Assembly: GCA_002189035.1 (NCBI GenBank)
Contig: NEEC01000030.1
Span: 124,001 to 188,000 of the forward strand
Direction: 5' to 3'
Origin: Utricularia gibba
Taxonomy: Eukaryota > Plantae > Magnoliophyta
Length of the DNA: 64,000 nucleotides
The notes under the pieces were generated by a model that was given only the letters and a program-made list of their open reading frames with translations, searched no databases and had not been told where the DNA came from. A program made the position numbers and the translations under genes. Shown here piece by piece: positions 15,086 to 60,879 of the stretch; position 1 is the stretch's first letter, and every line of letters begins with the position of its first letter.

Positions 15086-16445
15086 AGATTATCGTTGGGT
15101 TATCATATCGAACCAATGAACACATATACCCATGCTTGCTTGTGCATATTTATTTAATTTTATCGAGTGAGAAATTTATTTACAAATGAGAAAAATTGCT
15201 AGATTAGTATTAAAAAAAATTTGTAATATCATCAATTTGTTTATCGAACTAATACGATTGAAAGTGGTGGTGGTGTCCTTACTTGCCAAAAGATATGTAC
15301 TTTAATTTCAGTTACATAGATCCTAACTTCAAATTGGCTATGCATATTTCATGTTGTTGAGTATTTGGATATTCTTAACGCTGTACATAATCGAGAATCT
15401 CATTCTAGAGATTTGATTCCTTTAAATATTAGTTCAACTCTATTTTCTTTATTTTTTTTCATTTATTTCAACTTCAATTGAAGTATGAGAAATAATAAGA
15501 GCAACAATTGAGAAAAGATGGTTGAAATGATTTCTTAAGTAAATGCTAATTTTTTGTGAGAACTATGATATTGATGTTTCAAAAATAGATGATATTTATA
15601 TTTTTCTTGAAGAACGTGCACACCACCAACAAGATCATTTTACAAATGAAAGGTATTATCAAGTTGATATACTTTTAATTATTATTGATGCACAGCTTAA
15701 TGGTAATTCTGTAAGTGAAAAGAAATTGTCGAAGTAGTAAAATAAGATCATATCTACAAAAAATTGTTCTTGGAATTTTATTTTCAAACAAATATTCAAA
15801 AAGATTGAAAACCAAAAATAAGTGGTGTTTTAAAAACAACATGAAAATGACTTTGAATTTAAGATCCACCTTGCTCAAAACTCATCCATAACTATATATG
15901 TAAACCTTGAGGATTGACATGATTGCATAAGTTATGGGGTCTTATTCTAAAATAGTACTACTTGATGACCATTATACTACCATCTCTCATTTAATGAGAT
16001 TATAGAATCAACCATATCACCAAAGTCTTTCACTCCTTGTGATAACCCGTGTTTTCCTCATACTTAAATCTAACCTCTACACCTCAAACCCGCAGACAGA
16101 TTAGATAGAATGTACCCTACCAACAATATCCAATTGAACCCTTCTCTTTAGATGCTTGAGGCCGATTCGAAATTCTCCCACATTTCCTTGAGGTTATGTG
16201 GTAATAAAGAGCACATTGGTAAAGAAAACATTGCGAACAATAGAATCAAACATTAAATTAAATGTCAAAAAACATAATAAATCAGTTACATGCATACAAC
16301 TTGGACAATTAACACTTCACCGCAAATCCTTAGCCACAAGCACCTACACGCACACGCTTGAATCTAACATGAAAATAAACATGAAAATAGAAAAAATTCA
16401 AAGAAAAAGTGATCAAAAGACATGTCTAATGGTTGAGAAAGTGGG

Positions 16446-16962
16446 TGATGAGGGATAAAGTCGGCTGAGGTTAATCGGATTCTGAAAAGCTGCAAAAAGG
16501 GACTCTGAGGGGATAATGCCAACCGACATACCGATATCTGTCAGAAATCTGACAGGTATAGCCATATAACGCAGTTTGAAAAGCGGCTGAATTACGGCAT
16601 AACAGGCGGCCGATATCTAAAAAGCGAAATCGTATAGCATATGCAGAAAGCAACTGACATTTGCAGATGTCAGGATTCTGTCAGGTTGAGCCCTTCTATA
16701 AATAGAAGGAACTATGACAAAGAGGGGGATTTTTCTTCAACTTGTATTCTCTTCTTCACCTTCTCCGTCGAGTGAAAACCTTTTCCGGCGAGCTCCGGTA
16801 GCTCCGTGGTTTTTCCGCTTTTCGGCGGTTTCCACGTAAAAATCTTTGCTCATTTTTATTTCAATTGAACCAACCGTGAAAAACACAACTAAGTGCGACA
16901 TTCCCGATGGCACCTGCCACCTTAAATCAGCCTCCCACCGGATACCGATTTTACTCGTAACA
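16446..16962 (+). repeat. Retand 5' LTR (517 bp)
   Basis: TGATGAGG...CGTAACA; internal TATAAATA; about 20 substitutions and 2 indels versus the 3' LTR (by-eye count). Confidence 0.96.
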
Positions 16963-16966
16963 TTTT

Positions 16967-16984
16967 TGGCGCCCACCATGGGGC
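16967..16984 (+). promoter_or_regulatory. Primer-binding site complementary to the tRNA-Lys 3' end
   Basis: TGGCGCCCACCATGGGGC 4 nt after the LTR; one mismatch to the recalled TGGCGCCCACCGTGGGGC. Confidence 0.85.
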
Positions 16985-17040
16985 TGCGTTCTACAGCCCC
17001 ACTTGAGAAACCCACAGGAGCCACTTGTTAATCACGGATC

Positions 17041-18449
17041 ATGGTGGAAAATAGCACAGCCACCGACCCGGCTCAGGACGGAAGCACCGACGCGCGAGAC
17101 CTCAGCCTTATGATCACCAGCAGGGAGCAACTGAAGGCCCTGCTAACGGAAATCCTCGCCGACCTCCGGGCACCTTCAGGTCTCAACTCCAACGCCCACG
17201 AGAGAACACCCGAAACTGCACCACGAACGGAGAAGCAACCTCTTATTTCGGATTACTCCCCAGATACGGAAACTGCATTCGAAACTGAGGAGGAGATGCT
17301 GCGAAGAAAGAGCTGAAGAGAGAGTTAGACCAGATCCGCGAGAGGAGAAGACTTATCGACAACCGGAGATCGACGGGAAGAAGAGAGGATAGGGGTTTTT
17401 GGGACGTTTTCGATCAGAACGTATCCACCTGTAGAGGGGACGTTCTGGCCGACATCGCTTTAGCCTTGAAGAGTGGGGTTGAGGGAGCAGCTGGGACCAC
17501 AACGCTGCGTTTTGACCCCTTCTCGGACGATTTAATCAAGGAAGAACCCGAGAGAGGATTCAGGGTCCCAGACGGATTACCCATGTACGACGGGAAAGGG
17601 GATCCCATATCACAGATAACTGACTTCGATATGAGGATGTCCACGGTTCGACATTCAAAGGCCATGAAGTGTAAGCTGTTCGCTTGCTCGCTCCAGAAAG
17701 GAGCAAAGACTTGGTTCAAACAGTTAGAACCATGCAGCGTGGCATCTTATCGGGAGTTAGTGCTGCTTTTCACTACCTGATACGCTATCAACATCGAAGC
17801 TCCACCTTCAAAGGCAACATTATACTCTGTTCGGTATGACCACCGAAAAGAGAGCTTGAGAAGGTTCATCGACCGATTTAACTGCCAAGCGCAAGACGTC
17901 CAGCTGGATTTAAAGGAGAGGGTGGAAATAATGAAACGGGCCTTAGGAACGTCGAAATTGGGACAAAGTCTATCAAAGTGTCTGCCAAAGAATCTCGGAG
18001 AATTGTTAAGGAAAATCATGAAGTACATCCGAGTTGATGACGACCTCAGGGCCGAGATGAAAAGCCACGTGGAGATCCATCCGAGCCCGCAGCAAGAGAC
18101 CCAACTTAACCGGGGGCCTAGGCCGAACAAGCGCTGTGAAATATATCAGGTGGAACCAACCAGAACAGATGCCTACTGCGAAATACACAAGACCAGCGGG
18201 CATGATACTACCAACTGCCGAGTAATGAAGAGAATGATCGAGCAATATCATGTTGGTGGAGGAATGAGCAATGTGATACGAAACCCCGCATCGATGACGG
18301 ACCGAAAAAGAGGACGCAACGAACGAATCGGGAATGAAGGTAACCGATATCTGAAGTTCCTCCCAAAACCAATGAGGGAAGACCTGAAAGCATGTAGGGA
18401 ACCGAATCCCGGAGGAGGACAAGACGTACCGGAAAGTTCACGGAATTAA
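17041..18449 (+). pseudogene. gag: Retand gag (in-frame stops near 17316 and 17780)
   Basis: LPMYDGKGDPISQITDF...CKLFACSLQKGAKTWF...FIDRFN retrotransposon gag domain; ends in a HxTxxC motif region. Confidence 0.9.
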
Positions 18450-18455
18450 CACCAA

Positions 18456-21400
18456 ATGCAAGGCAGTCCCCCCTACATTCGAGAAATCCATGTGATATCC
18501 AGAGGGACCGAAATGGATGTATCCGGAAAAGCGCGGAAGAGATATTTGGATGAAGCCAGAAGAGAAGAAGTCTTCGAGATCGGAAATGGTCCGACTGAGA
18601 AAACTGCTTGGGAAAAAGAAGAGATCAGCTTCTCCGACACAGACGTCCCAGTCGCCCCAGCTGCAAGAGATGAACCTTTGGTGGTATTGGGAATATGCGG
18701 GAGCACCAAGGTAAGAAGGATTCTTATTGATCAAGGATCCTCCTGCACCATCATGAAGAAGGAAGTAGCAGAGTTACTGGCATCATCAAACAAGGGAAAC
18801 ATCCGCCACGTGCGCATGGGGTTATACGCCTTCGATCAGCGAGCCGTGCAAACTATCGGGAAAATAACCCTGCTCGTAACATTCAGAGCGGCAGGGCAGA
18901 ACCGAACCAAGAGGTTGGAATTCTTGATCCTGGATTTAGAGGTCTCATACAACATCATCCTCGGGCGACCCGGCATCAATCAATTCGGTATGATACCCTC
19001 CACTGTGCATTTGAAAATTAAATTCCCGACATCGAGGGGTATTTGCACGATGGGCATCGACCAACCAGCCGCTCGGTCCTGTTATGTATCTTCCTGCCGA
19101 GACCCCTACGCAAAAAAGCCGAGAGTGATGATGGTAGAAAAGGAATCCCGAGAACCCCCTAGACAAGCAATGGAACCAGTAGGGTACAAGTCAGTGCAGC
19201 TAATACCAGAAGATGCGCAGAAAGCAACCCGCATTGGTGCCAATCTGGACATCGGATTTGAGAAGAGGTTAGTTGAACTTTTGATGAAGAACGCCGATAT
19301 TTTTGCCTGGACTGCTGCAGACTTTGTAGGCATTGATCGATCTGTCGCCGAGCATCACATTGATACCTACCCGGGGGCAAAACCAGTTCGGCAAAAGCAA
19401 CGGCATTTCTCAGAGGAAAAGTGCCGAATTATCAAAGAAAAAACAAGGGAACTCTTGGAAGCCGATTATGTGAAGGAGATCTAGTATTCCGAGTGGGTAT
19501 CCAACCCAGTCATCGTCCTGAAGCTCGGGGGAAAATGGAGGATGTGCATTGACTTCACCGACCTCAACACCTGCTACGAAAGGGACCCTTATCCTTTGCC
19601 AAATATTGACAACCTAGTAGACGCCATTGCCAGATCCCGACTCTTGAGCACCATGGATGCCTATTCGGGATACCACCAAATTTTCGTTGCCGAGAGAGAC
19701 CAACTGAAAACCACCTTCTACACCAAGGATGGGGTTTACTGTTATGTGGCCATGCCCTTCGGTTTAAAGAATGCTGGGGCGACTTATCAGAGATTGGTAA
19801 ATAAAATATTCTCTTCTGAAATCGGTACCTCGATGGAGGTATATGTGGACGATATGATCGTAAACTCTATGAATGAAGAAGACCACTTAGCGTATTTGGA
19901 TTCTTGTTTCTCTTTGTGCCGGTCATACGGGTTAAAACTCAACCCATTGAAATGTTGCTTTGGGGTACGAAGTGGAAAATTCCTGGGGCATTACGTATCA
20001 GAGAGAGGAATCGAGGCTGACCCCGAGAAGATTAATGCAATATGCGAAATGCAACCCTCAAGGACAATCAAGGAGTACCAGAGCCTCACGGGTAAATTGG
20101 CTACCCTCAGCCGTCGATCAGCCGATAAGTCGGCATCCTTCTTCAAGGTCTTGCGAAAGGGAAACGCTCAAGAATGGAACGAGGATTGCCGGCTTGCCTT
20201 TGAAAAACTCAAGGAATATCTCTCATCATCCCCACTTCTTGTGGCTCCGAGAGCAGGAGAGCCTTTAGGACTATATTTGTCTATATCGCCCGTTGCAGTC
20301 AGCGCAGTCTTGACAACCATCTCTGCAAATAAACACCTTCTGGTGTATTATGTGAGCAAGGTTCTGTTACCGGCCGAAACCCGTTATTCGGTGACGAAAA
20401 AATTCATCTTGGCTCTGAAGATGGCGGCCACAACGCTGAGGTCATATTTCCAAGGTCGGCACATCGTGGTATTCACCAATCAGCCTCTGAAGAATATCCT
20501 ATCTTGACTAGAGATTTCCGGAAGGGTTGCCAAATGGGCGGTCGAATTGAGTACAATGGATATTGAGTTTAAATCGAGAACAGCAATCAAGGCCCAACCT
20601 CTTGCCGATTTGGTGGTCGAAATGACCAGGCCTATAGACCGTTTTGAAGAAGCCAATGACCGATGGGCCATGCACGTTGATGGCTCGACGTACAACGGCG
20701 CTAGAGGAGGAATAGACATCCGAACCCAGGACGGGGAACACATTTATATCATGGTGAAATTCTTATTCCCAGCCTTCAATAATGTGGCCAAGTATGAAGC
20801 CTTGACTGAAGCAATGAAAATTGCCAAGGAACTAGGAGTGGTGGAGCTCGACGTCTACACTAATTCACGACTTCTGCAAGGACAGTTTTCGGGTGAATAC
20901 GAAACCCATGACCCCCTCATGGCTTTATACCATATTTAGGTAAAGGAGCTAGCGAAAACCTTCAAGGAATTCAACATGTCGCGCGTGGCACGCGAGGAGA
21001 ACGATCAGCAGATAGCCTCGCCCGATTTTTTGCAGGGTTTCATGAGCTGAGGGAAGGAAGTGTGACGATTTGGCTGCGGGATCAACCTTCAGTGACCTTG
21101 TGAGCCATGAATTATATTACCCAGCAACCAGGAAATGATATCTCTCCATAGCTGAGTCACCTCGATGATTGGACATCACCCTACGTCCGGTATCTACGAA
21201 ATGGAGAAACACCATCTGATAGATCCAAAGCCCGACACTTAGAGATTAGAGCAAAGAGATATACACTGGTAAATGGAATTCTCTATCGCAAATCCTTAGA
21301 TGGACCCTTCTTGAGGTGTATCGGGGCAAAGCATTCTCAAGAACTTATAACCGATCTGCATGAAGAGGAATGTGGCAGCCACGTCGGCATACGATCCTTA

Positions 21401-22371
21401 TGCAGGAAAGCCTTGAGAACCGGGTATTATTGGCCAACTATGGAGCGGGATATTACCGCCAATACCATGCGAGTACACCAAGAAAGCTGGTAAATAACCT
21501 GACCCCTCTTCCATTCTCATGCCCGTTCGATCGATGGGGAGTGGATATTATGGGGCCATTCCCCCAAACCTCGGGCCAAAGGAAATTTGTCATCGTGGGA
21601 GTCGAGTATTTCTCCAAATGGGTGGAGGCTGAAGCCGTGGCAAAAATATCAGAGGAGACCGTTATTCAATATCTGTGGAGAAATATCTTCATCCGGTTCG
21701 GAATCCCTCAAGAACTAGTGACCAATAATGGAACCCAATTCGCTGGAGGAAGAATGGAGGCATTCCTGGATAAATATACGGTCAAGCACAACTTCACCTC
21801 GGTGTATCACCCGCAGAGCAATGGTCTCACAGAGGTGACGAATCGAATGCTCAGGCTAGGAATGAAGACTAAGCTTGAAGATTTTGGAGGATCATGGGCA
21901 GATCGCTTGGATGAATTGCTGTGGTCATATCGCAGCACCCCTCGGACCACCACGGAAGAATCTCCGTTCTTATTGGTTTACGGGTCAGAAGCCGTATGCC
22001 CTATCGAGCTAACCCTAAAAAGCTACCGGGTGGAACATTATAATGAAGAAGAAAATGCTAACCTACGAAAACTAGAGTTGGAGCTGTTGGAAGAAAAACG
22101 GCAAAGCATCTATAGCCGACTAGGGGCTCATCAGAGGAGAACGGAAAAGAGATATAACAAGTCAGTGTCCCCAAGGGAATTCTCTAAGGGAGATTTGGTG
22201 CTCCGAAGCATTCAACCACAGAGACATGTTGGAAAATTTGATCGCAAGTGGGAAGGCCCTTATCGGATTTCAAGGGTAATCGGAAAAGGAGCGTATCATC
22301 TAGAACAATTAGACGGCGTGGAATTCTCAAGGTCGTGGAATGCATCACACCTAAGGAAATTCTATACCTAA
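18456..22371 (+). pseudogene. pol: Retand pol: protease, RT, RNase H, additional RNase H, integrase; disrupted
   Basis: RILIDQGSS (PR); MCIDFTDLN, DAYSGYHQI, YVDDM (RT); WAMHVDGS...NNVAKYEAL (aRH); WGVDIMGPF, VTNNGTQF, SNGLTEVTN and KWEGPYRI (INT). In-frame stops at 19484, 20507, 20939; frameshifts around 21000-21490. Confidence 0.95.
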
Positions 22372-22469
22372 CTGGCTCAATGTCAATCTCCACAGGATTG
22401 CGCAGAATTCGGTATTCTCTCCCTCAAAACACTCAAGCGCCTGTAAATTCCTCCAAAGTGGAGATGGGT

Positions 22470-22720
22470 AAACGAAACCATAAGCCCTGGTCGAGTCGCG
22501 TAAGCCCACGCAGACCCTGAAAGATCTAAACCACAAGCCCTGGCCAAGCAACGCAAACCCAGGCAAATCCCCTAAATCGGCACCCCCTACGGGATACGGC
22601 AAACCAACTCGGGATCTCCCCCGATATATATACATGTGATCTCCCAAAACCCAAGCATAAGTCGGTGACAAGAATAAGCCCTGGTTCCCGTAAACCGCAC
22701 GCGTAAGCCCTGAAAAGCCC
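22470..22720 (+). repeat. Degenerate tandem repeats with an AAGCCCTG core after pol
   Basis: AAGCCCTGG, AAGCCCAC, AGACCCTGA and AAGCCCTGA recur at least six times; such arrays are known from Tat/Retand 3' regions. Confidence 0.6.
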
Positions 22721-23227
22721 TTAAGTATTGACCTTATTGTCGAAATCTCGAGACGACAAGTGCACCCAAAGCAAATCCACCCATGTTCAAAACAATGGGG
22801 TTCGGCCAGAAGAGGGCCCTTCCGGATTGGGGAAGTCGCTCAACCTATGAGGGTTCCGACCTACTTCCTTAGCAGCGGTTCAGCACGCATGAAGAAATAC
22901 TAAGGCAAAAAAAATCAAAAAGCCCAACCAAAGGGTTGGCGAAAAGACACCCACCCTCGGATCACAAAAGCATAGGCGAACCTTCCAAGCCTAAACACGT
23001 GATAGACATAACAAACCAACTCGAGGCTTCCCCCGAAATGTGATATCATCAAAGGCAGAAATGATGCGCAAAAAATGGAGTAAATCAGAAGGAAATCCCG
23101 AACCGGGATATAAAAAATGTTCAAGAAGCCCCACAGTAGGAGGAAAATACACCAAGTTAAAAAAGTCACTAAAGTGCGGGAGGAGATGGGGGTTAATGGG
23201 AGGATTGGCAGAGGAACCGGTATGTCG

Positions 23228-25330
23228 CTACATCCTGGCTCTTAACTTGGCGTCATTCTCTCGCCCTATCCTCATCCGAATCAGCGCAATCAGCCGCTCC
23301 CGATCAGCTTCGAACCCGAACTCCAAGGCTTGGAAAGTATCCGCGATAACATCAAGCATGTTCTCATCCTTCGTCAAATGGGTTTACCCTGTCGAAGCGT
23401 GGATCCATGATTGAAAGCCCCAATTCCTGGCTGAACTGTCGCCTCTGACGGTATAGAAGTAAGGCGATTAAGTCTCCTGCATAGATATCGGAGAGTTTGG
23501 AAAAACAGGCCGAGTTGACAAAATCATTCAGAAGACCCTACCGAGATGCTTGTTGATGAAGCAATTCGGCCTCTAGTGCCGAGATGCGGTCCCTGGAATG
23601 CTCTAACTCCGCTTCAGCCACCTCAAATCGAACTTTGAAGTCTTCTCTCTCCGATTTAGCGTCGTCAACCGCCTTTCCCATTTCCTCGACCACATTCCGC
23701 AATTCTTCCTCCTGGTGGGTGCGTTTCCCTTGAACGGTCTTCGGCGAACTCCCCTCCTCCTCCAACAACTTTATCTGGGCATCTTGAGCTACATCGTGGG
23801 CTTGAAGCCGAGAGACTACTGCCGACTGAGAACCAATCTCTCTAACCACTCCCCATCCAAGAGTTAAAGCCTGAAGGAATATTGCCGAGTCAAGAACCGA
23901 CTACTTAGAATTTAGAAGAGAAAATGGGATGCGTACCTGCCAGATCCCTTCAAGTACCGTTTCCGGTCGAGCATCTGAGGTATTAGGCATAGCTCCATCC
24001 AGGATTCTCCTTAGTTCAGCTGGAACTGAAGGTGGGGGGAGCACCGGGTTATCCCTTACTTCCACAAGGATAGAATCCCTCTGTATCTCAACTGGGGGAG
24101 CCGATGTTGAAGCTCGAGCCGAAAAGAATCTCGCATCAGGAATGGAAGCATCATTGAGGTCGGGTGATGGAGGAATTTTCTCTTTCCCTTTTCCGGCTGA
24201 AGGACAGGGAGTCAACTCCCGAGTCTCAGAGACTTCTACTACTGGATCCTCTCCCGAGGAGAGATCGGTGGCGTCCTGCTGAGCTCCAAACGTATCAATC
24301 TGAAAGAAAAACCGAAAAAGATTATCAACGGGAATTCATGGTAACTGTTAGATAGAAGACAGACCTGTGCAGGGGAGAGATCGGGTTCCTACGCCCTCTG
24401 CATCTCGGCAGAGAACCGCGCCATCACTGAATCCTCCAGGGAGTTACTTCGAGCCATCTCTTTAGCTAAAAACGGAAGTAGGAAAAGTAATAAGGCATAA
24501 TGATGATTTTGAAACTCGGGAAAGCTAAGCCCAACTACCTCTTTGCCTCTTTGAGGGTTTGTGCGCGAGTGCTTTAACCCTCTTCTTTTTCTTGGGGCCT
24601 CGGTTTGAGCAGGTGGGGGATCGGGAATGAAGCCGAAACAAGAGGAAGTGACGGAGGGGGGCCAAGAGGAAAGTTTCTCGAATCGGCGCCATCGAAAGGA
24701 ATGATATCGGGCCAATGGGGATCTCGAGAACGACCGATAATACACAATCTTTTCAGGGATTCACCCGAAAACATCAAGGCACGAGACTCGTACCGGATTG
24801 AGCCTCGGCTAAGCCTCTCGTAAAGGACCTCACGGGATTCGGAAGAAGATCGATACGCGTCAAAGAGCTTAACTCTTAATGGGCTCGGAGGATCGATTGG
24901 GAAATTCCACCGAAAACCCGAAGGGGGTGCTACCCATAAAAAGGATGACCATCAATTGTGGTGGGTATCAGGGGCTTTAACAATCGTGGTGAGATCGGCC
25001 ATCCCATCGGAGACTTGGCTTTACGAACGGCTATCTTGAAGAGATGACAGAAGTCCGCCATACCGGCCGAATAGAAAAGGAAAGTAGTAAAGTAGAATAT
25101 GGAATTCGGGGCGAGACAGTAAATCGGGATTGCAAAGGTAAAGAGAAAACGGACTATTAAAGGATGAAGAGGGAAGTGTAAACCGCTTTCGAAATAGGCA
25201 AGCGGAATTGGGAGACTGAATGGAGGCAGGGGGTCCTCACCTACCCCCAAGGAATTTCAGTATCCTGAGCATGAGAAAGCTGTTACTCATCAGGGATCGA
25301 GTACCGAATGCGAAGGGAGGGGATGTTTAG
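23228..25330 (-). pseudogene. Antisense accessory gene of the Retand element (Transposase_28-like N-terminus, coiled-coil C-terminus), three introns
   Basis: LAYFESGLHFPLHPLIVRFL...LAPNSIFYF; introns 24538-24466, 24364-24300, 23936-23871; coiled-coil-like ORF 23538-23849; several stops and frameshifts. Confidence 0.82.
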
Positions 25331-25834
25331 TTCACTAGATCTCCAACCCATTTTCAAAAAAATTGAAAGAAGCCCAAAACCCTAGAACGAGGCAGGAGTC
25401 AGGAAGGGTGAAGGACTTAGAATGACAAGGGGGACCTATCAAAAATCCCAGAAGACCGAACGGAAAAGACGAAGAACCGAATGATACCTGGAAAATTGGC
25501 GGTTTCCGACGTATATCGCGACGATCGAGCGGCAGACGAGTGCGACGGAGTACGGAGGGCACAAAACTCTTGCAGGCAACAAAGAGGGCAAAGGAAAGAA
25601 TTGACGCGAAGGGTGCTTATTTATACGGGAAAGGTTTGGGAGACGGAGCGTCGTGACATTTGAGGTACCCAGAATGACCGAGAAAAAACGTGGCGTGCCG
25701 ATGAGCTGACGCATGGCAGAGAAAGGCATTTGGCTTATTCGGGGGAAGCGGCAGCTCAAGAATCGATATCGTAGTAGTTCTGATCCCCCGATTTACCCCG
25801 AAAGGGCTAATATCGGCGAATCAGAGGAGCTGAA

Positions 25835-26349
25835 TGATGAGGGATAAAGTCGGCTGAGGTTAATCGGATTCTGAAAAGCTGCAAAAAGGGATTCTGAGGG
25901 ATAATGCCAACCGACAGACCGATATCTGTCAGAAATCTGACAAGTATAGCCATATAACGCAGTCTGAAAAGCGGCTGAATTACGGCATAACAGGCGGCCG
26001 ATATCTAAAAAGCGAAATCGTATAGCATATACAGAAAGCAACCGACATTTGCAGATGTTAGGATTCGGTCAGGTTGAACCCTTCTATAAATAGAAGGAAC
26101 TATGACAAAGAGGGGGATTTTTTTCAACTTGTATTCTCTTCTTCACCTTCTCCGTCGAGTGAAAACCTTTGCTGGCGAGCTCCAGTAGCTCTGTGGTTTT
26201 TCCACTTTCCGGCGGTTTCCACGTAAAAATCTTTGCTCATTTTTATTTCAATTGAACCAACCGTGAAAAACGCAACTAAGTGCGACATTCCCGATGGCAC
26301 CTGCCACCTTAAATCGGCCTCCCACTGGATACCGATTTTACCCGTAAGA
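25835..26349 (+). repeat. Retand 3' LTR (515 bp)
   Basis: TGATGAGG...CGTAAGA (terminal CA mutated to GA), followed by TSD GTGGG. Confidence 0.96.
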
Positions 26350-27289
26350 GTGGGGTATTTATAGGAGAGCAAATTCAAGTATTTGTATTGAGCTTGCTTG
26401 ATGGGCTTAAATGAGATTAACTATCCAAATCTTTTATCCAATTTTTTTAAGATCATCTTCAAATCTTTATCAAATCTTGGACCAAATCTTCATAGTTTGA
26501 TCGAGTCTTGGTTTGAGATTCGTGGTCCATCAAGTCTATAGTTTGGTGATTCTTGATTTCTCCTCAAATTGATCCAAAAATACCATAAAAATCCAAAAAA
26601 TACATTTCTTTCTAAAAAGATTAAAGCAGTGTGAAAGATACAGAATCATTTGAAAATAATGAGAAAGTAGGATTTAAGGTAATTAAAAAACATCAAGGAG
26701 TAATGGAAGAATATGTTTTGGAACGACATAAAATCACTTACCACATTAATTGAATCTCAAATTGAATGAAAAAGTTATGGATCTATTAGTCCTTATAACT
26801 ACATTGATTCTCAAGAAGTTTTTTTAATTATTTCATCCAGTTGAAATATATCGAGTGGTATAGAAATATATCTAGAAGGTTTTACTGGTCAAGAGATTTT
26901 TGACTTGTATGCTCAATTAAGATATTTTATTGTAGATATTCCTCGTGATCCATAAATAAACAATATAGGTATATTATTTGAATTGTATCTATGCATAACA
27001 ACAAAGAGTGGTAGAAATATGACTTATTATTGGGTTGATAGGCTTCTTCACTTGCTCATCAATCTTCTTGTTATCATTTTACAGCAGAAAGTTTATTGAA
27101 ATTGCAGAAAAATATAGTTATCATGATGTTATTGAAGACTTCAAGAATGTGAAAAACGTAGAATGCATATATAAAATGTAAGTATTTTAAATATATATTC
27201 TTTACATTTTATTATATATAATTATAATTTTTGTCCCTTCTAGATTGAAGTGCAACATCTGCCTTTGCTCTTAGAAGAGTTCCTCTAGC

Positions 27290-41548: not shown

Positions 41549-41566
41549 TCCAAGGCAATGGCGCCA
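41549..41566 (-). promoter_or_regulatory. Primer-binding site, tRNA-Asp type
   Basis: TGGCGCCATTGCCTTGGA versus the recalled Athila PBS TGGCGCCGTTGCCGGGGA, 6 nt from the LTR end. Confidence 0.85.
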
Positions 41567-43162: not shown

Positions 43163-44458
43163 TGTTAAGTGTCATTTTCTAGTTATTATTTATGTATTAA
43201 TTAAGTGCTAAGTCGCCCAATTAGGAGTCTTATTATTAAGTATTTGATTTTTACTAGAAAATTCCTATTTTCTCATTTTGTGTATATTTTATGCATTTTT
43301 TCTCACACTTTGACCGAGGCATGTCAGGAGACTGTCAGGAGTGTTGCAGGAGGATTGCAGGTGGTCAGACTCTGAGTTTTCGTGCCTTGTACGCGAGTTG
43401 GAATGATTGGGTGGAAGACTGACACTGGTCAAGGCCCATGACTTACGGCATGTCAGAGTCTGCAGCAATTATTGGGCGCAAACTTGCACGCAAAGAAAGT
43501 CTGTTGGCGCACGCAAGACAGAAGGAATGATGGGAAGGGGACCCAAAGGAGTTAATGCACGTGGGAAGTCATATAAAAGCCACTTGGAGCACTTAGTTTA
43601 CGACTTTTGAACATTTTCTCTTGTACTTAGAACTTTTGAGTTCTTCCTCCCCTCAAGGAGGAAGAACACTTAGCCTCCTTTTCGTTTCTATTTCTATGGC
43701 CCTTTTGGGCTAAAAACCTTTAGTTTCTGAGAAGTAGATGAAGTTTCCTTCCAAGTCCTAAGCAATACACTCGGTTCTTCACTGAATTCCATTCGGATTC
43801 CGCATACTTCCACGTGTCTTGTTACAGTCTTTCTGTAACGACTCTTAGTCAAGGTCCATGAGTAGCAGGCCACTTCTCGCGGATTTTGGTGAAGATCAAG
43901 GTGAAGAGCACCAACTCCAACCCTACTGGTTCGAGGGAAGTAGCAGATTGTTTGTGGCCTAGGTACTGCAACAGTGGATAGGTTGTGACCTCGGACCTGC
44001 CACTGGCCATTGGCAACAGCTGGGCACATGCGCACAATTCGGTTTTGAAGGCAATCGAAGGCAATCCTCTTGTCTTCCTAATCGTCCAAGGGGGAATCAC
44101 ATGAGGCTATTCCCGTGCCTCCTTGTCAATCAGAGTGTAAGGGAGAGTAGGCTATTCCTTGCTCCTATAACCAACTATTCGGAAGAAATCAGTGAAAACC
44201 AAGGCAAGGATGGACAAAGGAAGGAGATGGAGTCTTATTCCCAGGAACTGCGTCCCATAGTCAAGGCCCATTACTTAGGTTGTATCTTTCATTTCTGCAT
44301 CTTAAAAACCCCCTTTTACAAAACCGTGACATTTTGTAGAAGTTGCTTGCAAACACTTTTCACGAAAAACAACTCCCTGAGATCGATACTCGTACTACGC
44401 TTTCTAGTGTTTTACGTTTTAAAATATTTAAAATTTGTTGAGGAAACGACACGCAACA
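43163..44458 (+). mobile_element. Solo LTR, family A' (1296 bp), TSD GTGGT
   Basis: TGTTAAGTG...CGCAACA; GTGGT at 43158-43162 and 44459-44463; empty paralogous site near 33690. Confidence 0.96.
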
Positions 44459-48323: not shown

Positions 48324-51300
48324 ATGATGACAGCTAAGAATGGACCATGTCCATAATGCATAAATAAGCATGCATAAGAATTGATTTTCGAAAAATTTAA
48401 TCTAGTGAGAAATGTAGTCAACTCTATGCTCTACTGTCATGAAGCTTCTTTTAATCCATGTAAAGATTTCTTGAGCAAGCACACATCATTATGCTTGCAA
48501 AAATAGCTTGCTGAGGGATGCACATATATTTCCTCTTCAAGAAAAGCATTATTCATGTCAACTTAATGAAGATACAATCGACACATTGTAGTTAAGGGTA
48601 CAAATATTTGCATCATAATTACCTTTGCAATCGGTGCAAAACTCTCATGGAGATCAATACACATAACTTGGATATAACTCTTTATTACTAATCAAGATTT
48701 GTATTATGCAATAGAGCCACCAGTGTGTCCTCTTGATTCTGTAAACCTATTTGTACCCCACAGTGCATTTGCTCAATGGAAAGTTTGTCAATGACCATGT
48801 TTCGTTGTCACATAATGTTCCTTGCAATATAGCGAAATGACAAGCTCTTGAGTTTGATAAGTAATATAACGTACAATCCTACAAAAGATTTGTATAGATC
48901 CTGAAAACAAGGACATTCTAGATAATAAAACATTTGCTAGGGCAAAATAACGTGAAAGCTTGAATGACTTGAGAAAAAAAAGATTGTCCTTCCAATAAAT
49001 AAAGCCCTTATTTGATCCTCTCAACAGTGAGTATTTCCTTAGAGTCCTGGGTCTGTAAAAGTCAATAATCATCAGAAATAACACATCGATACACATATCA
49101 TCACCTAATCACATAATAGATAATAGATAGTATCAAAAAATAGAGAACCAATAAAGTTTTAAGCAACTTTTTCATGCTTGCCACATCAATTGTCCCAATC
49201 CCTCAAATGGGGCTAGTGAAACAATATGGCATGCTAAATTGTTGATTAACGACACTTTTGCCCATAGAAAAATGATCAATAGAATAGCAAACAAGAGTTG
49301 TAACACTGGAGTCTATTATCCACTTCCATAGTTTTCATATAAAATCCTATGCAATGTTGCTTGTCATAGTAACTTGAGTGGTCATTAATATTGAAGATTG
49401 TGGTAAACCTAAGAAATAAAGCCCAATGAAATTAACAGGATGATGTTGTCCAACTTTTTTGTATATATATATTTATTTAAATATACTTCCTTTATTCATA
49501 ACAAATATGAGAAGCTCTAATTGAGGCCTCTCTTGTCATTGATTTTACGATCATTGCACCCTATGTGACGATATCAAAAGTTGCACCCTATGTGACGATA
49601 TCAAAAGTTGAGTTATCAGTCACAAGCTTATCGAGATGATTCTCAATGTTCAATATGGTTACAAATGGCATTCCTACAGTAATATCCTTATTCATTGCAA
49701 AAATTTGATTGCAAGTAGCATTTTAAACAGTCAATGAGTCCTCTTAAAAATTGCATCAATCAACTGGTATTAGACAAGTTCAAACGTATAATCATGTTGC
49801 ATTTTTAGCACTTCACTTTAGGTGTGAGAGTATCTAAATACTTCCATAGAGCATCTAACCTTGGATAATGTTGGGCCACACTCTATTATCCTTGGTTGCA
49901 AATGAAAACATCAAGTTGAGCTTGGTAGTATAAGTTGTTAATTAGCAAGCTATAGTGTTCTTCTAACATATTTTGTAGTTTATACGCACTTGATGCACCT
50001 ATGAAACTAGGAAACAAATCCTTTGATATTTATTGAATTTAATATCCAAAAATATACCATATAATCATTATGTAACTACAAAGCACAAGGGGGATCATCT
50101 TTAGAAGGTATGAGAATATCACTAAACCATTCTAAGTTTGTTCTTTGCGCCAAGGGTTAATCGAATACTATGATGCCATTCAAAGAAATTCCAGGTAGAG
50201 AGAAAAATCAGTCACTAAAGAGGCGCTTGGATGATCGGAGCCATTGAGAAGGAGAAAATCAAACTTATCTTTATGATATCTAATTATTACTCTTTTGATT
50301 TTAGATACTGCATCATCAAATTTTTTGTTTCTAACCATGTTAAAAAAAAAAAAAAGAAACTCTTCTCACCAAAAGGTAATTATAACAAACATGATTCTCT
50401 TCTACTTTTATAATTGAGTTTTTTATAATTGATTCTTTTTCAATGGCAATATTTTTATAATTGAGTGTGTGTTTTTGCTAATAATGATAGTATATATAAA
50501 ACTATATTTTTAGCTTCACCTTATTTGAAAAACACAACGCCGGTAACCACATTTCTCACCTCCCGTTACGATCCTGTGTACCTGCACTCAATTTAGTTTC
50601 CAATCAGCAGAATTGTTCTGCTGGAACACCCACCATATAAACTTTTGGAGGAAGCTATGGTCTGCAGTGTATACGCATCGCGGATGCCTCTCTCAAACCT
50701 GACGCCACCATTTGCGCTTGCAGCACTGTTAGCATTGGGGAATTTTCACGAGCCCCAGTCTAAGGGCGAAAATCGGTGTAGTCGACGGCGACGACTCCAT
50801 CCTCCGCTGAAAAAAAAAGAGATAAACATGAGCATAGCACCAGTATGCACTGCGACTATTCATTCATTAATTTGTGGGACGCTGATGGGAATCTGTATTG
50901 TACTTAGAATCCCTCAACCGCAAAAACTTTGAACACTTCTTTGAATGATAACTACTCCTTGGAAAGACAATTGCCGAACCTTGGCTCTTGTTAATTGGGA
51001 AGTGAAATGAACTGTCAGAAACGGTCTTCCACACTGAATGAAGGATTCTACTAGTTCCAGTACTGTGTATAGGGTGATCCGAAAAGACTGATCGAGTCGT
51101 AAGCTCCGGTCATCTTATCGTTGCATTACGTCGAGATGGGTAGATATGTCTGTGGGTGTTTAGTTTTGCTCTGTTATAAACTACAGATATAAGGGTCTGT
51201 TGCTGCTGCAGATTGTCGAATTAGTGCATATACGCTTGCTAAAAAGCATGGCAAAAATTGTTACTAACACAGATGCTCAACAATGAGCTGTTGTGTATCG

Positions 51301-51492
51301 CTGAGTAGTTCACTTCCAGCTGTGCATCTGCAGGCCCTTTCAGCATCGTCCTTGAAGCTGCATTCTGCAGAGAGCTTACAAAACAAATTGGAAATCGGGC
51401 TGGAAGCTGGAAAAAAATCGGAACCTATACAGGAAACAGTCATAGGAAACTTGGTGGATAGTTGTAGGCATGTTAGGTGTTAAGTGTTTTCA

Positions 51493-52356
51493 TCAGCATC
51501 CGATGCTATCTTCCGATGGCTGTAAAGCTTGGATTTTTACCATGACCTTCTTAAACGACGAACTCGACATTGTTGTACCTTGGAATCCGTAACCATATCC
51601 AATTAGAACACCACATTTGCGACAAAGAAGTTTGGATCTTGGAACATAACCTGCCCAAGCCATAGGCCAGCATTTCGTTTTGTCCTCCTGTGTAAATCTG
51701 CTGGGATCAATGGATCCAAAGGAGATGTACCCCTTGTTGATAGACCTTATATACTTGGAATCAATGGATGATGCTGTGCGGTTCGTTGAGGTTAAGTTAA
51801 GTGGATATCGACACGAACCGCAGCTGCAAACATGCAGATGGACAGATGAAAAGAGCAGATTCATTTTTATATGAAGCCACAGGATGTGGATGGTTCTTCT
51901 CCGATTTGAAAACTAAGAGAAAACTGCCCAACAAGTAGAAGCAAACACACCCCTAACCAACAAGAATGCAAGGGGACCGATCATGATTGAAGAATGGATG
52001 ACAACAAACGCTGTTCCATAAAAAAACTATATTTTTACCAAATCAAAAAAAAAAAAGAAAGAAGCATAAAAAGTGTAGAAACAATAAAAGAAAACATAAA
52101 AGCACCCGATAATACGACACAAATCAAACAAAGAAAAGATTTCGGGCAGAAAACTGGTGGATGCGTAGTGGCTAGAACCAGAGTAATGCAATCGAATCAC
52201 AGTTTTCACGCACCCCCATTAAACTTCCAAAATAATACCGAGCCCACAACAGATAAAGAAAAAATACAACTGAAGGGCCACACGCAGGGATCAAGATAGA
52301 AGGCAATATGGAATTGGAAGATGCAATTACCAGTAGGAGACATTGCGTTGGGACAT
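51493..52356 (-). CDS. Small uncharacterised putative zinc-binding protein (CxxC...CxxC), similar to the At4g08330 family; 2 exons, 118 aa
   Basis: Exon 1 52356-52331 (MSQRNVSY), GT-AG intron, exon 2 51823-51493; spliced MSQRNVSYCCGSCRYPLNLTSTNR...ISFGSIDPSRFTQ...SKLLCRKCGVLIGYGY...KIQALQPSE; 357 nt in frame. Family match is from memory. Confidence 0.9.
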
Positions 52357-52900
52357 TTTCTGGGTCTAAGGCGATGACCCCATGGAGAATACAACAGTGC
52401 CCGAGATGCGGAACCCGATAACTTCTTGGGAGTTGGGAAAGAAGAAGAAGGCGTTTCCGCAGTTGATGTAAAAGTCAGTTGAAAATAACAAAGGATTGGC
52501 GCTCTCTCGTGTCCTTTGTTCACCCGATTCGTGCTAATAAATAGTAACTTGCTACGGTCTCCAACCTAATAAGCTTTCACCTCCCTAACATTAGATTGAG
52601 TTATCGACCGAAATTTTATTTTTATTATAATTTAGGATTCTTTTCGATAAAATGATATTTAATTTGTATGTGAATATTATTGTAGCTTAATTTTTTGTAT
52701 AATTGGCTGGACGGTGGTTCTATTAAACAAAAAAAATCAAATATGCATGAAACATCAAAAAGCTAATATATTATTTTTAGTAGCAATAAATGGGAGGACG
52801 CTAAATGGTGAGACTGAGACCGAGCGTAACAATTTTATCAAAAGGTATCCATTATTATAAAAAAAATAATAATAATTGTAAAAAAATAGTAATGCAACAC

Positions 52901-54031
52901 TGTGATAATTGATTTTACTGCAAAACATGTTTTTTATTACTATTGAGTATTGTTTTTAACTACTTTACACTCCAATTTCTCATTATTTTTAATTATTTTT
53001 ATATATTTTACACTAATTTAATCTTTTTGAAAAGAAAGTGTATTTTATGGATTTTTTGGACCTTTTTTAATCAATTTAAAAAGAAATCAATACCTAAAAA
53101 TTTATAGGTTTGATGATACATGAATCTCGATCAAAGGATGAAGATATGATCTAAGATTTATAGATAAGATAAAGATTTTAAGATGATCTTTAAAAATCTA
53201 CATAAAATATTTGAATAGAAGTTCTTATCCAAACCTATCAATCAAGTCCAATATGAAGAATAGAATTTGTTTTCCTATAAATACCCTACTCACTCAATCA
53301 TTAGAGTTCATAACCAATTTTTCTGTGTATTTTTTTCCCTATTTTTGTGTTTAATTTCATGTTAGAATCAAGTATGCACATGTAGATTCTTACAGCTAAG
53401 AATTTATGGTGAAGGCTTACTTGCGCAAGTCCTGCATATGTGACTGTTTTATTATGTTTTTCGACATTTAATTTGAGATTTGTTCTATTTTTTACAATAT
53501 TTTCTTTACCAATGTACTTTTTAGTACCACATAATCCAAAAGGAATATGGAAGAATCTAAGGATAGGCCTCAAACATATTAGAAGAAGAGCTCAATTGGA
53601 CATTGCTGGTAAGACATATTTTATGTAATCAGTATGTGAGGTGTAGGAGATAGATTTGAGTGTGGGGAAAATATAAATTACCATAAGAGGTGAAATAACT
53701 TTAGTATTATGGTTGATTCTATAATCCTGCTAAAACAAGGGACGGTGATATAACGGTTATCGAATAATACTATTTTAGAATAACACCTTCAGAATTTACG
53801 CAAGTAGGTCAGTACCCAAGGTTTATATACACAAGTATAGGTGAGTTTAGAGAAGGGTAGATCCTAGATCCAAACCCACTTTTCATATTATTTTTAAAAC
53901 CAGTCTATTAGTTTGTTTATGGTCATTTTTGAGTCATTGTTTCAAAAGAAAATTCCAAAAACAATTCCTTTTCGATACGGATCTTATTTTATTACTTCAA
54001 CGATTTCTGTACACTTGTAGAATTACGATCA
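52901..54031 (+). mobile_element. Family D LTR (about 1130 bp) with no internal domain after it
   Basis: TGTGATAA...TACGATCA, TATAAATA near 53277; collinear with the interrupted copy at 15698-26745. Confidence 0.85.
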
Positions 54032-54037
54032 AGCTTT

Positions 54038-54112
54038 TAGTGCCATTGCCGGGGATTGAGCCTGGGTCACCAGCATGATAGATAGGTATACTCACCACTA
54101 TATTACAACAAC
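54038..54112 (-). tRNA. tRNA-Asp(GTC)-derived pseudogene, full 72 nt plus degenerate CCA, continuous with the LTR primer-binding site
   Basis: Minus strand reads GTTGTTGTAATATAGTGGTGAGTATACCTATCTATCATGCTGGTGACCCAGGCTCAATCCCCGGCAATGGCA then CTA; about 57/72 identical to the recalled plant tRNA-Asp; anticodon GTC now ATC; mostly C>T and G>A changes. Confidence 0.9.
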
Positions 54113-54124
54113 TTAAAAATTATG

Positions 54125-54365
54125 CATTTGGGATATAATGGACCCAGAAATTTTCATAATGGGGCATAATGGACTAATTAGTTTTGTAAATGGGCATATT
54201 TGACCTATAAGTTTAGTGAATTGGCATATTTGACCCAAATAGTTTACTGGTTCGATATATTGGACCTGCATAGTTGAACCCTGTTCAATAATATAAAAAG
54301 TATTTTAATAATATATAATTAATTATTAAAATATATAAAAATTACTGTTTTTGATATTTGACCCT
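54125..54365. repeat. Cluster of short subrepeats resembling a DNA-transposon (MULE-like) terminal region
   Basis: Six variants of GGCATAwTkGACC (GGATATAATGGACCC, GGGCATAATGGACT, GGGCATATTTGACCT, TGGCATATTTGACCC, GATATATTGGACCT, GATATTTGACCC). No partner inverted copy found in the window. Confidence 0.5.
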
Positions 54366-54734
54366 AAAGTGAATTGGGGGTGGCCCTCTTTTCCTCTAGC
54401 AAGTGAAGGCAAACTATGAAGAGCTTGGGAGAAATGATTCCCGGACATCCAAAAAGGGGTGAAAATTGGATGTGTTTTTTTTTTTTCTGATTCTGTGCAT
54501 GTTAAAGTTTGTTTTTTTTTTCCTATATAGAGACTAGAAAATAGTAGAAGAAGATTATAGAAGAGTAGTTGCTCTAGATCATCATTCTCTAAAGGTATAG
54601 CTTTTGTGATTTTTTTTCACTTCATTGCATTATTGCATTTATTTCTTGTTTGCCTGATTGCTATTTTTGAACTTTTGTGCAAAATTTCGTTTTTTTTGTG
54701 AATGATAGTTTTCCAAGAGATGCTGAACAATTAT

Positions 54735-55818
54735 TGATAAAAATCCATATCAAATAAATTTATAAGCCATAATCCTCAAAAAATACAAATTAAACACAAA
54801 TTTACAGTGGAATTCGGAGTCGATTACAAGGAGCTTGTGTTTCCTAAGTGTTTCAGTAGATGCATAATTCGGAATAACAGTGGGTCTTAATCTAAACTCA
54901 GACTAGCAGTTGCAAGTAAGTTCAGTAAACAAAATCAGGTTTCAATGTGAAAGGTAACAAGTACTGGTTCTAACTCAAAATAAATCAAGTATCTGAGTTG
55001 CTAAGCTACTTGTTGCCCTCCTTAGGTCTACCCATGGAATGATAGAAACAAGAATTAAGAAACAAACATAAATTATATCATTAACCCTAGACCCACATCA
55101 CCATATTTCATCTTAAGACATCCCTAAAGTTTTAGCTACTCATATATGGAAGATAAAGCATGATATCATTAAGATAAACTGAAGAGAATAGCAAAGACAT
55201 TGTAAAACAATAGTCAAAGTAACGAAATATTCAGCAAACTAAAGATAAAGTAGAGTGTTTTGTTTGTGATCTGCTACAGTTCACTGCCTTAAACAGTAGT
55301 GCTGAATTGGGTTTTTGATGTTGTTCTTCAAGTCTTTGGTCTTCCTTCTGGAGAAATTGCCTTCCTCTTCCTTCTTTCGTATTCGTCGTGTTCGAGTTGG
55401 GGGAGAAACCCCCTCGTGTGTGTGTTGCAAACTGCTGGTTGAACCCCCTTTTGCGACTCGCTCTCCTCCATTTTTTTTCTCTATCTCGCACTTCCCAGAG
55501 CAGGTACAATCTTTGAGAGCTCTGCTGCTCTTGCCCTTGACTTGCAGACTGCCACCGCGACAGTGTACTCATTGCTCCTTGCTGCACGGTGGCTTGCACG
55601 AAATCCTTGACTTTTCCATGATTTTGGGGTTGGTGCTAGACTCAAAATCGGATTAGAACATGGGGTGGGCAAAATCAAAGGATTTAGCCCACTAATACAC
55701 CAAAAATCACATTTTTTCTAATCACATAAAAATACTTAAAATTATAAAATTAACAACTAAACATAATTAAAAATTTGTGATTGTCCTATCCTAAAACCTG
55801 AAAATTTGTGTGCTATCA
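54735..55818 (-). mobile_element. Solo LTR, family C (1084 bp), TSD ATTAT
   Basis: TGATAAA...GCTATCA; ATTAT at 54730-54734 and 55819-55823; lacks a central block of about 270-320 bp present in 46412-47819. Confidence 0.92.
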
Positions 55819-56149
55819 ATTATGTTGATCTTTATTATTTATCATTTTGAAGTTACTTTCTTTGAACTTTTTTACCTACTAAACAGAAACTTTACATGGA
55901 TATGTCATGTGTTGCCTATGTGCACTTGAAGAAGATTCTTCAAGATGTTTTAGGGTTGTATATCTCTCTGCAATGTGAATTGGAACAATTTCATGCATAT
56001 AACTAATTGAATACCTAGATAATCCATAATTAATTTAAACTCGTTGTAGTGATATGTGTCTTAACAATTTAAGCTTTCTATCTTCAATTAATGAATGGTA
56101 TGGGTGCCACTAATATAGTTCAAATGAAGCATCATTTGCTCTCTATCTT

Positions 56150-56536
56150 ATTGGAACTAGACCTGCAACTATGTGTTGGCTGCATACATGAATACATGTC
56201 CTCAGATGAATTGTAATAAGCTGCAACCTTGATGTTAGAAATGTAGGTATCAGTGGAGTACCACTGCCATTTCAGTTAGTAAGTATGATAATAAACAATT
56301 GCCTATGTTGGTTGCTTTGCTTAAGATGACTAACTGGGCATGCATGTTATGTAGTGGCTCCTGTTTTTTATGCTCACTTGGCTGTAACCCAGCTAGGTCA
56401 GTGGATGAAGTTTGACCAAAACTCGAAAACATCCTTTGGCCAAGGTGGTGGTTTCAATAGTGCAACTTTCGCTTTGGCTGTTCTTGTGATGCCTCCACTT
56501 GAGAAAAAAGTTAGAAACCCCATGTTCTTATGCTAA
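56150..56536 (+). pseudogene. AGO4: Argonaute AGO4/6/9-clade 3' fragment (end of PIWI domain) with intron
   Basis: Decayed IGTRP..SDEL; 32-bp exon 56247-56278 YQWSTTAISV; GT-AG intron 56279-56354; last exon APVFYAHLAVTQLGQWMKFD...PPLEKKVRNPMFLC*. This matches the recalled AGO4 end YQRSTSAISVVAPICYAHLAAAQLGTFMKFE...NSMFFC*. Paralogue within the clade not resolved. Confidence 0.87.
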
Positions 56537-56586
56537 TCGGAACTAATTCATCATATATAACATATCTTTTTAGAGGTAAATATCAT

Positions 56587-59297: not shown

Positions 59298-59876
59298 GCC
59301 ATTGGAAGAGTAGAATGTGGATAGCGATTCCTTCACCCCTTGTCATAGTGATAGAGTTTTGACTACTCAAACTTTAATTCTCTTTTGATTGGGGTAGTAA
59401 CTTTCAACAAAAACGAAATTTTTGGACCTAACTTGCCTCCATCTAAAGTAGAGACTAGCTTGCAGTCATGTAGTGAAATGTTTTGAAAAAATACAGTAAA
59501 ATAAAAATAGTAAACAAAAATAAAATGAATGAAATGAGGTCTCGGTATCTCGTCACAGTGCTCTTTGGTTCGTAAAATGAATGAATGGCAAGATCTTTGT
59601 ATAATCTTTCAGGTATTTTCATCACTACAAGGGTGACGTTATCAAATGCTTAGCAACTGGACATTTATCAAATAATTTCTTCTAGCCATTTTGTTCATAG
59701 ATTTTACAACAAATGGCCCTTCCCATTTCAACTTCAATTTTCCTAGGTGAAGTTGAAACCTGGAATGATACAAAAGTACGTTCTACCTTGCCTCAAATTC
59801 CTTCTTTTCAATCATGGTATCATGATAAAATTTGGTCAATTCCTTGAAACTACAAGAATTATTAATTCAATCGAAC

Positions 59877-60380: not shown

Positions 60381-60879
60381 TCCATGAAGCTTCTCCTCAA
60401 TAGTGGTTAATACCTACTTTCACTCTCAACATAGGAACTAATAGGGTTAATACCTGCTTTCACTCTCAATAGAGCTTCATATAATGACTTTTATTTCTTT
60501 TTCTTTTGATACTAAACAATTCACAAATGAAAATGCATGAGAACTAAATTTTACTAAAATAAATCCAAAATCTCAAATAACTAATGATAAACAAAAATTT
60601 TTGAATATCATTGCAAGAAAATCAAATTCGCGTATCAAATAAATTTAGAAACCCTAATCTAAAAAAAATACAAATTCAGAAAACTTGTATAGTAGATTTT
60701 GGGGTCAATCAAGGAATAGGTACTTGCAAAGTGCTTTTCGAAATGCAAAATTTGAAATAAATTTTACTCTTGGTCCATGGTCAAACTAATAGCCGTAACA
60801 AGTTTAGTAACTAAAATTGAATCATAATGTAGAAGGTAACAAGTATAGCTTTTGTCCATAAAGTAATACTATGATGCCT

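Follow-up and report, generated by a model that had tools for sequence, protein, structure and literature searches.

In a stretch of Utricularia gibba DNA 64,000 nucleotides long (contig NEEC01000030.1, positions 124,001 to 188,000; hereafter the window), a long terminal repeat (LTR) of a family that we call D runs, by way of a short spacer, into the antisense copy of an entire transfer RNA for aspartate (tRNA-Asp). The unit spans from base 1 of the LTR (52901) to base 1 of the tRNA (54112), and both its anatomy and the recurrence of its junction at other loci can be read directly from the DNA. As for its origin, we think it probable that the unit is a dead-end plus-strand strong-stop complementary DNA (cDNA), for which reverse transcriptase (RT) copied the whole of the primer tRNA and which was then captured in the chromosome by end joining.

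Results

Anatomy of the LTR-tRNA unit

The plus strand up to the LTR end at 54031 reads ...GAATTACGATCA, the last bases, at 54024-54031, being ...TACGATCA; a TATA-like CCTATAAATACC lies inside the LTR near 53270 (features and coordinates are collected in Table 1). The tRNA is antisense to the LTR and begins 6 nt beyond the CA with which the LTR ends: bases 1-3 of the primer-binding site (PBS), TAG at 54038-54040, stand as the complement of CCA, and the tRNA complement runs on from position 76 to position 1. The initial annotation had listed an LTR end, a 6-nt spacer, TAG and 72 nt of antisense tRNA-Asp, and all of these are present where it placed them. On the left the unit is flanked by AACAC and on the right by TTAAA, with no target duplication. 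The motif CAACA occurs at 52895-52900 and again at 54104-54108, where it falls among the final 9 bases of the tRNA complement (p ~0.04, post hoc); this shared motif may represent microhomology used in joining.

The order of LTR, spacer and PBS is that of an ATHILA element. The ATHILAfinder preprint describes the junction between the 5' LTR and the internal domain of ATHILA as an LTR terminus TATCA, an AT-rich spacer of 3-6 nt and the PBS TGGCGCCGTTGCC; at our locus the junction is ...CGATCA + AGCTTT + TAGTGCCATTGCC, and all 3 mismatches to the published PBS are transitions. The window also holds an intact ATHILA-like element, E2, whose junction serves as a control: it reads ...GCATCA + AATTTT + TGGCGCCATTGCC and passes into an ordinary pyrimidine-rich leader instead of continuing as tRNA, and gag, RT and RNase H follow downstream of the PBS on the minus strand. 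The layout of the junction fixes the orientation of the family D LTR. Because this junction matches both the ATHILA 5' junction and that of E2, the tRNA copy continues the element's own PBS, which is the 3' part of the copy, as the initial annotation had assumed.

In E2 itself, similarity to the tRNA-Asp complement seems to extend about 11 bases past the 13-nt PBS and into the T loop (41530-41553, minus strand; TTGGAGTTGAG against GGGGATCGAAC, with one gap), and the leader begins afterwards. The normal plus-strand stop of this lineage may, judging from this extension, lie beyond position 58.

Two solo LTRs in the window, together with the 3' LTR of E2, which likewise ends at CA without a spacer, show the form of an LTR that carries nothing beyond its terminus. 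An ordinary solo LTR, or a 3' end processed by integrase, is ruled out at the family D locus by the retained spacer and PBS and by the unequal flanks. Nor does the locus have the pair of LTRs, the gag-pol region and the 5-bp duplication that mark a complete ATHILA insertion. That no gag follows, as had been asserted from the first reading of the DNA, is borne out by tblastn: 79 peptides of at least 50 amino acids, taken from E2 and from a Ty3/gypsy element, E1, found no match in 54000-64000, in 48000-52900 or downstream of the second family D copy described below. There is no third family D LTR in the window, and thus no partner LTR downstream of the locus.

Table 1. Features of the LTR-tRNA unit, of the second family D copy and of the control elements in the window
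Feature	Position	Strand	Remarks
Family D LTR, copy 1	52901..54031	+	1,131 bp, TGTGAT...ACGATCA; from alignment with copy 2
LTR-to-PBS spacer AGCTTT	54032..54037	+	AGCT after LTR end also in copy 2; AGTTTT in loci L001, L003, L006, L007
Primer-binding site TAGTGCCATTGCC	54038..54050	+	Decayed version of TGGCGCCGTTGCC; 10/13 against published ATHILA PBS
Complete decayed tRNA-Asp body, positions 1-73	54041..54112	-	Full-length Rfam match; anticodon ATC from GTC
Family D LTR, copy 2, 5' part	26348..26745	-	71% identity to 52901-53291
Family D LTR, copy 2, 3' part	15694..16445	-	75% identity to 53285-54035
Nested Ty3/gypsy element E1, splitting copy 2	16446..26347	+	9.9 kb; RT and integrase domains
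E2 normal PBS TGGCGCCATTGCC (control)	41554..41566	-	Intact ATHILA-like element
Canonical solo LTR (control)	43163..44458	+	Ends ...GCAACA, directly flanked by GTGGT, no spacer
Sister solo LTR (control)	3010-4319		Ends at CA, flanked by AACAC

The tRNA-Asp copy and its decay

With the Rfam model RF00005, Infernal places a tRNA at 54041-54112 on the minus strand, covering model positions 1-71 of 71 at 31.9 bits (gathering score 29; E=5.9e-4 in a 4-kb search and 0.0095 in the whole 64 kb), and finds no other tRNA in the window. An intact tRNA-Asp from one of the comparison loci presented below, L007, retrieves the copy by BLAST against the window with E=1.5e-18. ARAGORN calls no tRNA at 54041-54112, a silence that fits the decay of the copy; the anticodon loop is CUAUCAU, giving an anticodon AUC (Asp) that has decayed from GTC, and several stem pairs are broken.

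To count the decay, we took as references the intact plant tRNA-Asp(GTC) with CCA of two comparison loci, L002 and L007, which score 60.3 bits each. The copy differs from them at 15-16 of 75 positions (60/75 are identical to L007), and 13-14 of these differences are transitions, almost all of them C>T or G>A, with 9 in CpG. Such changes have turned the anticodon from GTC into ATC and, behind the discriminator base, CCA into CTA by C>T. Because the differences to intact tRNA-Asp are almost all transitions, many of them in CpG, we take the copy, from its bases, to be a once perfect mature-type tRNA-Asp with CCA that has since decayed as methylated plant DNA decays. The two transversions affect positions 26 and 41; position 58 still has its A. 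It had been suggested that transversions be compared with the modified positions of the tRNA, and this comparison proved uninformative: neither 26 nor 41 is known for a blocking modification, and A58 is correct.

The copy resembles a nuclear tRNA-Asp gene in its Asp cloverleaf, and departs from one in its CCA, which such a gene does not encode, and in its distance from an oligo-T. The terminator said to be missing in the initial annotation is indeed not near, the first run of at least four T on the tRNA strand coming only about 77 nt past the CCA. The complement of CCA is present, though the PBS would supply it too. A tRNA-derived short interspersed nuclear element (SINE) is likewise a poor description, as the tRNA-like stretch is single-copy in the window, a complete reversed LTR comes after the tRNA, and there is no tail.

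A second family D copy in the window

The LTR had been assigned to a family of its own, and this was upheld by a second copy in the window, split by E1: with the nested element removed, the two align at 76% identity over 1,115 columns. Their homology starts exactly at TGTG (52901) and stops at ...ATCA/ATTA + AGCT (54035), and the flanking DNA of the two copies is unrelated on both sides. E1, whose 515-bp LTRs are 96% alike and which is bordered by a target duplication GTGGG, is young; its PBS, following a spacer TTTT, begins TGGCGCCCACC..., and its primer tRNA is therefore different from that of ATHILA-type elements.

Copy 2 (15688-15699, minus strand) terminates in ...ACCATTA + AGCTGT and then gives way to unrelated DNA, so that the spacer is kept whilst the PBS and a target duplication are absent. 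An unprocessed cDNA end from which the primer has been removed would have this length; going by the sequence of the junction, copy 2 could be a second capture without integrase, or a mere deletion. A tRNA downstream of copy 2 was sought by purine/pyrimidine local alignment and by anchored, offset-tolerant and decay-aware tests, and the results were all within chance (p=0.09-0.9).

The same junction at other loci

As a query for further cases we joined the 13-nt PBS to the next 12 bases of the tRNA-Asp complement, which gives a 25-mer that crosses position 58 and is not expected in a normal element. In a metagenome collection it identified 7 loci, 6 of them independent (L003 and L005 overlap), all on low-GC, plant-like contigs; the viral and prokaryotic genome collections contained no match. 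With six further loci whose junction extends past A58, the rarity that the first description ascribed to the event was overstated. Every comparison locus has ...CA and an A/T-rich spacer ahead of the tRNA complement, the spacer being AGTTTT in L001, L003, L006 and L007 as against AGCTTT at the window locus, and L007 also shares the CGATCA.

What follows the tRNA complement differs from locus to locus. In L007, the complete complement is followed by one base and then by an open frame YIIYNQIPIALEDQEKTTFTCPFR that aligns with E2 pol (tblastn E=1e-5); by this alignment, the 5' end of the tRNA passes, in sense, into the central part of an ATHILA RT. L006 (minus strand, ~870-984) has an LTR end with AGTTTT, 36 bases of tRNA complement, a T, a second TGGCGCC and an apparent leader, an arrangement which suggests a PBS duplication, as expected from over-extended strong-stop DNA switching onto the end of the minus strand. 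L004:3144-3601 is a head-to-head palindrome with arms of ~215 nt, each composed of LTR end, AATT and antisense tRNA-Asp, which meet at the tRNA 5' ends; the arms are 79% alike, the left one being without tRNA bases 1-10 and having an 8-nt deletion, and the whole looks like the product of fold-back (snap-back) reverse transcription.

The smallest case is a unit of ~100 bp at L003:903-1015, which is the same as L005:4571-4683 in opposite orientation. It consists of TG...CA (19 nt), a spacer AAGTTTT and a complete antisense tRNA-Asp with CCA, the tRNA being intact (52.7 bits), and a 5-bp repeat CCACT stands on both sides of it (chance ~0.01). Read on the tRNA strand, the unit is a primer tRNA extended by the initial 26 nt of minus-strand DNA; no gypsy protein was found within 12 kb of it. 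A candidate duplication in L002, CTTTT, was not above chance.

The sequence after the tRNA is different at all comparison loci, and none has a tRNA complement followed by leader and gag. Taken at the level of their sequences, the structures of L004, L006 and L007 cannot arise by recombination with a tRNA gene, and the forms seen across the comparison loci fit products of RT template switching, fold-back and abortive synthesis. We also considered chimeras of metagenome assembly; these are unlikely for L003, L004, L006 and L007, because their right-hand partners are not the flanks of tRNA genes and have no long word in common with the tRNA.

Discussion

In textbook accounts of LTR retrotransposon replication, the plus strand halts 18 nt into the primer tRNA, and products that read through are lost; the locus described here would preserve in a chromosome a product of read-through in which all of the primer was copied. 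We envisage that tRNA-Asp primed minus-strand DNA in an ATHILA-type (Ty3/gypsy) element, and that the plus strand, begun at the U3 border (U3, R and U5 being the three parts of the LTR), copied U3-R-U5 and the 6-nt spacer. Rather than stopping ~18 nt into the primer, it would have gone on through the attached tRNA as far as nucleotide 1, leaving a 3' tail unable to pair for the second strand transfer, and therefore no internal domain would have been added. The resulting molecule of LTR, spacer and antisense tRNA would then have entered a chromosome, probably through end joining where the DNA was broken and not through integrase, and would later have decayed through methylation-driven transitions. 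We are led to this scheme because the two ends of the unit are the predicted ends of read-through plus-strand strong-stop DNA, and between them lies what such DNA should contain: base 1 of U3, the whole LTR, spacer, PBS and tRNA past position 58, with no internal domain. We infer both the read-through step and the route of capture.

The separate steps of this scheme have counterparts in known systems, and failure of the stop at 1-methyladenosine 58 (m1A58) and capture of strong-stop cDNA are already known from experiments with retroviruses and yeast. Retroviral plus-strand strong-stop DNA normally ends one base before the m1A58 of the primer, and without this stop RT goes further into the tRNA, giving a product that can neither finish plus-strand synthesis nor integrate (PMC8599865). 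The product predicted is the same as ours, namely U3-R-U5, PBS and further tRNA complement without an internal domain; however, it was observed in vitro and in infected animal cells and is described as not integrated, whereas the unit in U. gibba is fixed in a plant chromosome, was copied to tRNA base 1, and belongs to an ATHILA-type element with a tRNA-Asp primer. The primer itself could be part of the explanation: in Arabidopsis, nuclear tRNA-Asp(GTC) is among those of which RT makes full-length copies almost exclusively, and therefore has few blocking modifications (PMC11658184).

For the capture, yeast Ty1 offers a plausible route, as 3'-LTR cDNA with nucleotides found only in cDNA is captured there at chromosome breaks by end joining (PMC11372161). 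Like the unit described here, these inserts are LTR-rich cDNA that entered without integrase; they are, however, mostly of ~45-300 bp, experimental and with few extra nucleotides, whereas ours is an old natural insertion of a full 1.13-kb LTR with 75 tRNA bases, for which the repair of a break is presumed. Closest in lineage are the ATHILA particles of Arabidopsis, which hold abortive strong-stop DNA composed of LTR only (PMC7197481). This is the same kind of LTR-only intermediate, with no full-length cDNA; it is extrachromosomal, and the text consulted mentions no tRNA extension. Within the literature searched, we found no description, in plants or elsewhere, of an LTR in a chromosome that runs into a complete copy of its primer tRNA.

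Several considerations weigh against the capture of a read-through cDNA. The only other family D copy carries no tRNA, and the placing of family D in the ATHILA lineage, which its sequence suggests, was made from the junction alone. A58 was read correctly, although in Arabidopsis m1A58 is reported to be ubiquitous among nuclear tRNAs (PMC11658184), so the primer would need to have been unmodified or faithfully copied at this position. For the route of capture, the only indication is that an old and decayed locus shows no target duplication. As for the comparison loci, their species are unknown, as they stem from metagenome assemblies, and the query by its design selected for extension past A58. 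Finally, the DNA past 54112 occurs just once in the window. It is AT-rich, and a TATA-like ATTATAT stands in it, ~25-30 nt upstream of tRNA base 1. Plant tRNA genes often carry a TATA-like motif upstream; in a window of 39% GC, AT-rich motifs of this kind are common and hence weak evidence.

This last point bears on the explanation that survives best beside our own, which is that the PBS recombined with an antisense tRNA-Asp gene nearby, or that a deletion joined the two. The PBS shares 13-18 nt with the 3' end of such a gene, and these would have acted as a short direct repeat. Lost in the process would have been the internal domain, the host DNA in between and the 3' LTR, so that only the 5' LTR, the spacer and TGG would be left, followed by the gene with its own upstream flank. 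The CCA complement, the spacer and the absence of both internal domain and right-hand duplication are explained equally well in this way, the intact A58 and the tRNA copy as a whole bear no signature of RT misincorporation, and the DNA beyond tRNA base 1 is AT-rich, with its TATA-like motif at about -25 to -30. Yet a nearby tRNA-Asp gene in the right orientation is required, and the 64-kb window has no other tRNA; moreover, none of the comparison loci needs such an event, and L004, L006 and L007 are impossible under it. The initial annotation had left the choice open between read-through by RT and recombination at the PBS; these three loci tip it towards read-through and, as no test at the locus itself separates the two, we keep recombination as a rival, albeit an unlikely one.

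Perhaps, instead, the read-through product switched template back into the element, as in L007, and integrated in the normal way with two LTRs, the remainder being lost later. L007 and L006 show that switching does resolve read-through products, with element sequence still downstream. Here, however, neither a remnant of element protein nor a second family D LTR is found in the 10 kb to the right, and an extra, unobserved deletion ending exactly at tRNA base 1 would be required, which makes this course distinctly improbable in our view.

We give rather little credence to the idea that the extended junction is inherited, i.e. that there is a sub-lineage of ATHILA whose primer-binding region is extended to a full antisense tRNA-Asp, and that the locus is a truncated member of it. 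It is true that the junction is met with again in several LTR families that are unrelated, and that the similarity of E2 to the tRNA covers ~24 nt, past the 13-nt core. Against this, the sequence after the tRNA changes at every locus without one instance of tRNA complement, leader and gag in succession, the second family D copy is without tRNA, and the known chemistry of replication offers no entry for extra tRNA bases into the minus strand. As to the chance insertion of an LTR just downstream of a genuine tRNA-Asp gene in opposite orientation, there are organisms whose LTR elements do target tRNA genes, but the spacer common to copy 2 and the other loci and the CCA complement contradict it, there is no terminator for RNA polymerase III (Pol III), and orientation, spacing and species of primer tRNA would all have to coincide, so that we can attach almost no probability to it.

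If the unit is indeed a captured read-through cDNA, the comparison loci would illustrate the ways in which such products can be resolved: a jump into pol, a duplication of the PBS, a fold-back palindrome, and a mini-insert of ~100 bp with a target duplication. One could go further and speculate, with a confidence well short of even, that the RT of ATHILA often copies the whole of a lightly modified tRNA-Asp primer, and that cDNAs tagged with tRNA (either an LTR with tRNA, or tRNA with a few U5 bases) have repeatedly been fixed in plant genomes. Were this so, LTR retrotransposons would be a regular source of CCA-bearing retro-copies of tRNA-Asp, some of them intact and possibly expressed. Such seeding by retrotransposons would also concern annotation, as tRNA-finding software could call these copies genes or pseudogenes, and an LTR followed by spacer and PBS without a target duplication should not be classed as an ordinary solo LTR. 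Taken together, the loci are natural material for studying the plus-strand stop in plant elements primed by tRNA-Asp, a primer with few modifications that block RT.

A further implication concerns the origin of SINEs. In the 1990s, Ohshima and Okada reportedly put forward a model in which tRNA-derived SINEs arose from strong-stop DNA. Read on the tRNA strand, our locus is tRNA, CCA, spacer and the complement of U5-R-U3, which is the intermediate that this model postulates; the unit of L003/L005, with its tRNA, 26 nt and 5-bp duplication, is nearer to it still. The likeness has its limits, as the locus in U. gibba is single-copy in the window, has no tail of the type of long interspersed nuclear elements (LINEs), carries a decayed tRNA and gives no sign of Pol III transcription or amplification. 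Should our wider speculation hold, these loci would nonetheless be natural examples of the strong-stop intermediate proposed for the heads of tRNA-derived SINEs, and would give that old model concrete intermediates.

A physical tie between tRNA-derived sequence and an LTR element is also known from Helenus/TRIMp3 (PMC10886601). There, the tRNA-like part is inside both LTRs, in sense, and provides a Pol III promoter, and a separate PBS and polypurine tract lie between the LTRs. At our locus, the tRNA is outside a single 1.13-kb LTR, is antisense and continues the PBS, and the arrangement is thus not that of Helenus/TRIMp3.

Other features of the window

Elsewhere in the window, the only pieces of tRNA-Asp or its PBS are the normal PBS of E2 and a 14/17 match, in sense, to the first 17 bases of tRNA-Asp at 46397-46413 on the plus strand (GTGGTTGCAGCATAGTG). 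The search of the window with this 5' 17-mer gave 2 matches, one of them the locus itself, where 0.08 were expected for the whole search. The match directly precedes TGTAATAAC..., which is possibly the start of an LTR family with further copies at 54741-55375 and 60585-61533.

To the right of the tRNA, the stretch 54113-54420 has no inverted partner anywhere in the window that would mark it as the end of a DNA transposon. A 30-bp tandem repeat of 2.5 copies lies just right of the tRNA, at 54162-54235, and its subrepeats are local. Farther on, an open reading frame of 60 amino acids (56354-56536) resembles, by eye, the C-terminus of Argonaute, with no match in Pfam. The left flank of the unit is host DNA, and 1 kb to the left of the LTR lies an At4g08330-like gene, an intact single-exon open reading frame of 123 amino acids (51493-51864, minus strand) with the At4g08330 beta-tent domain (Pfam PF24046, E=2.4e-34).

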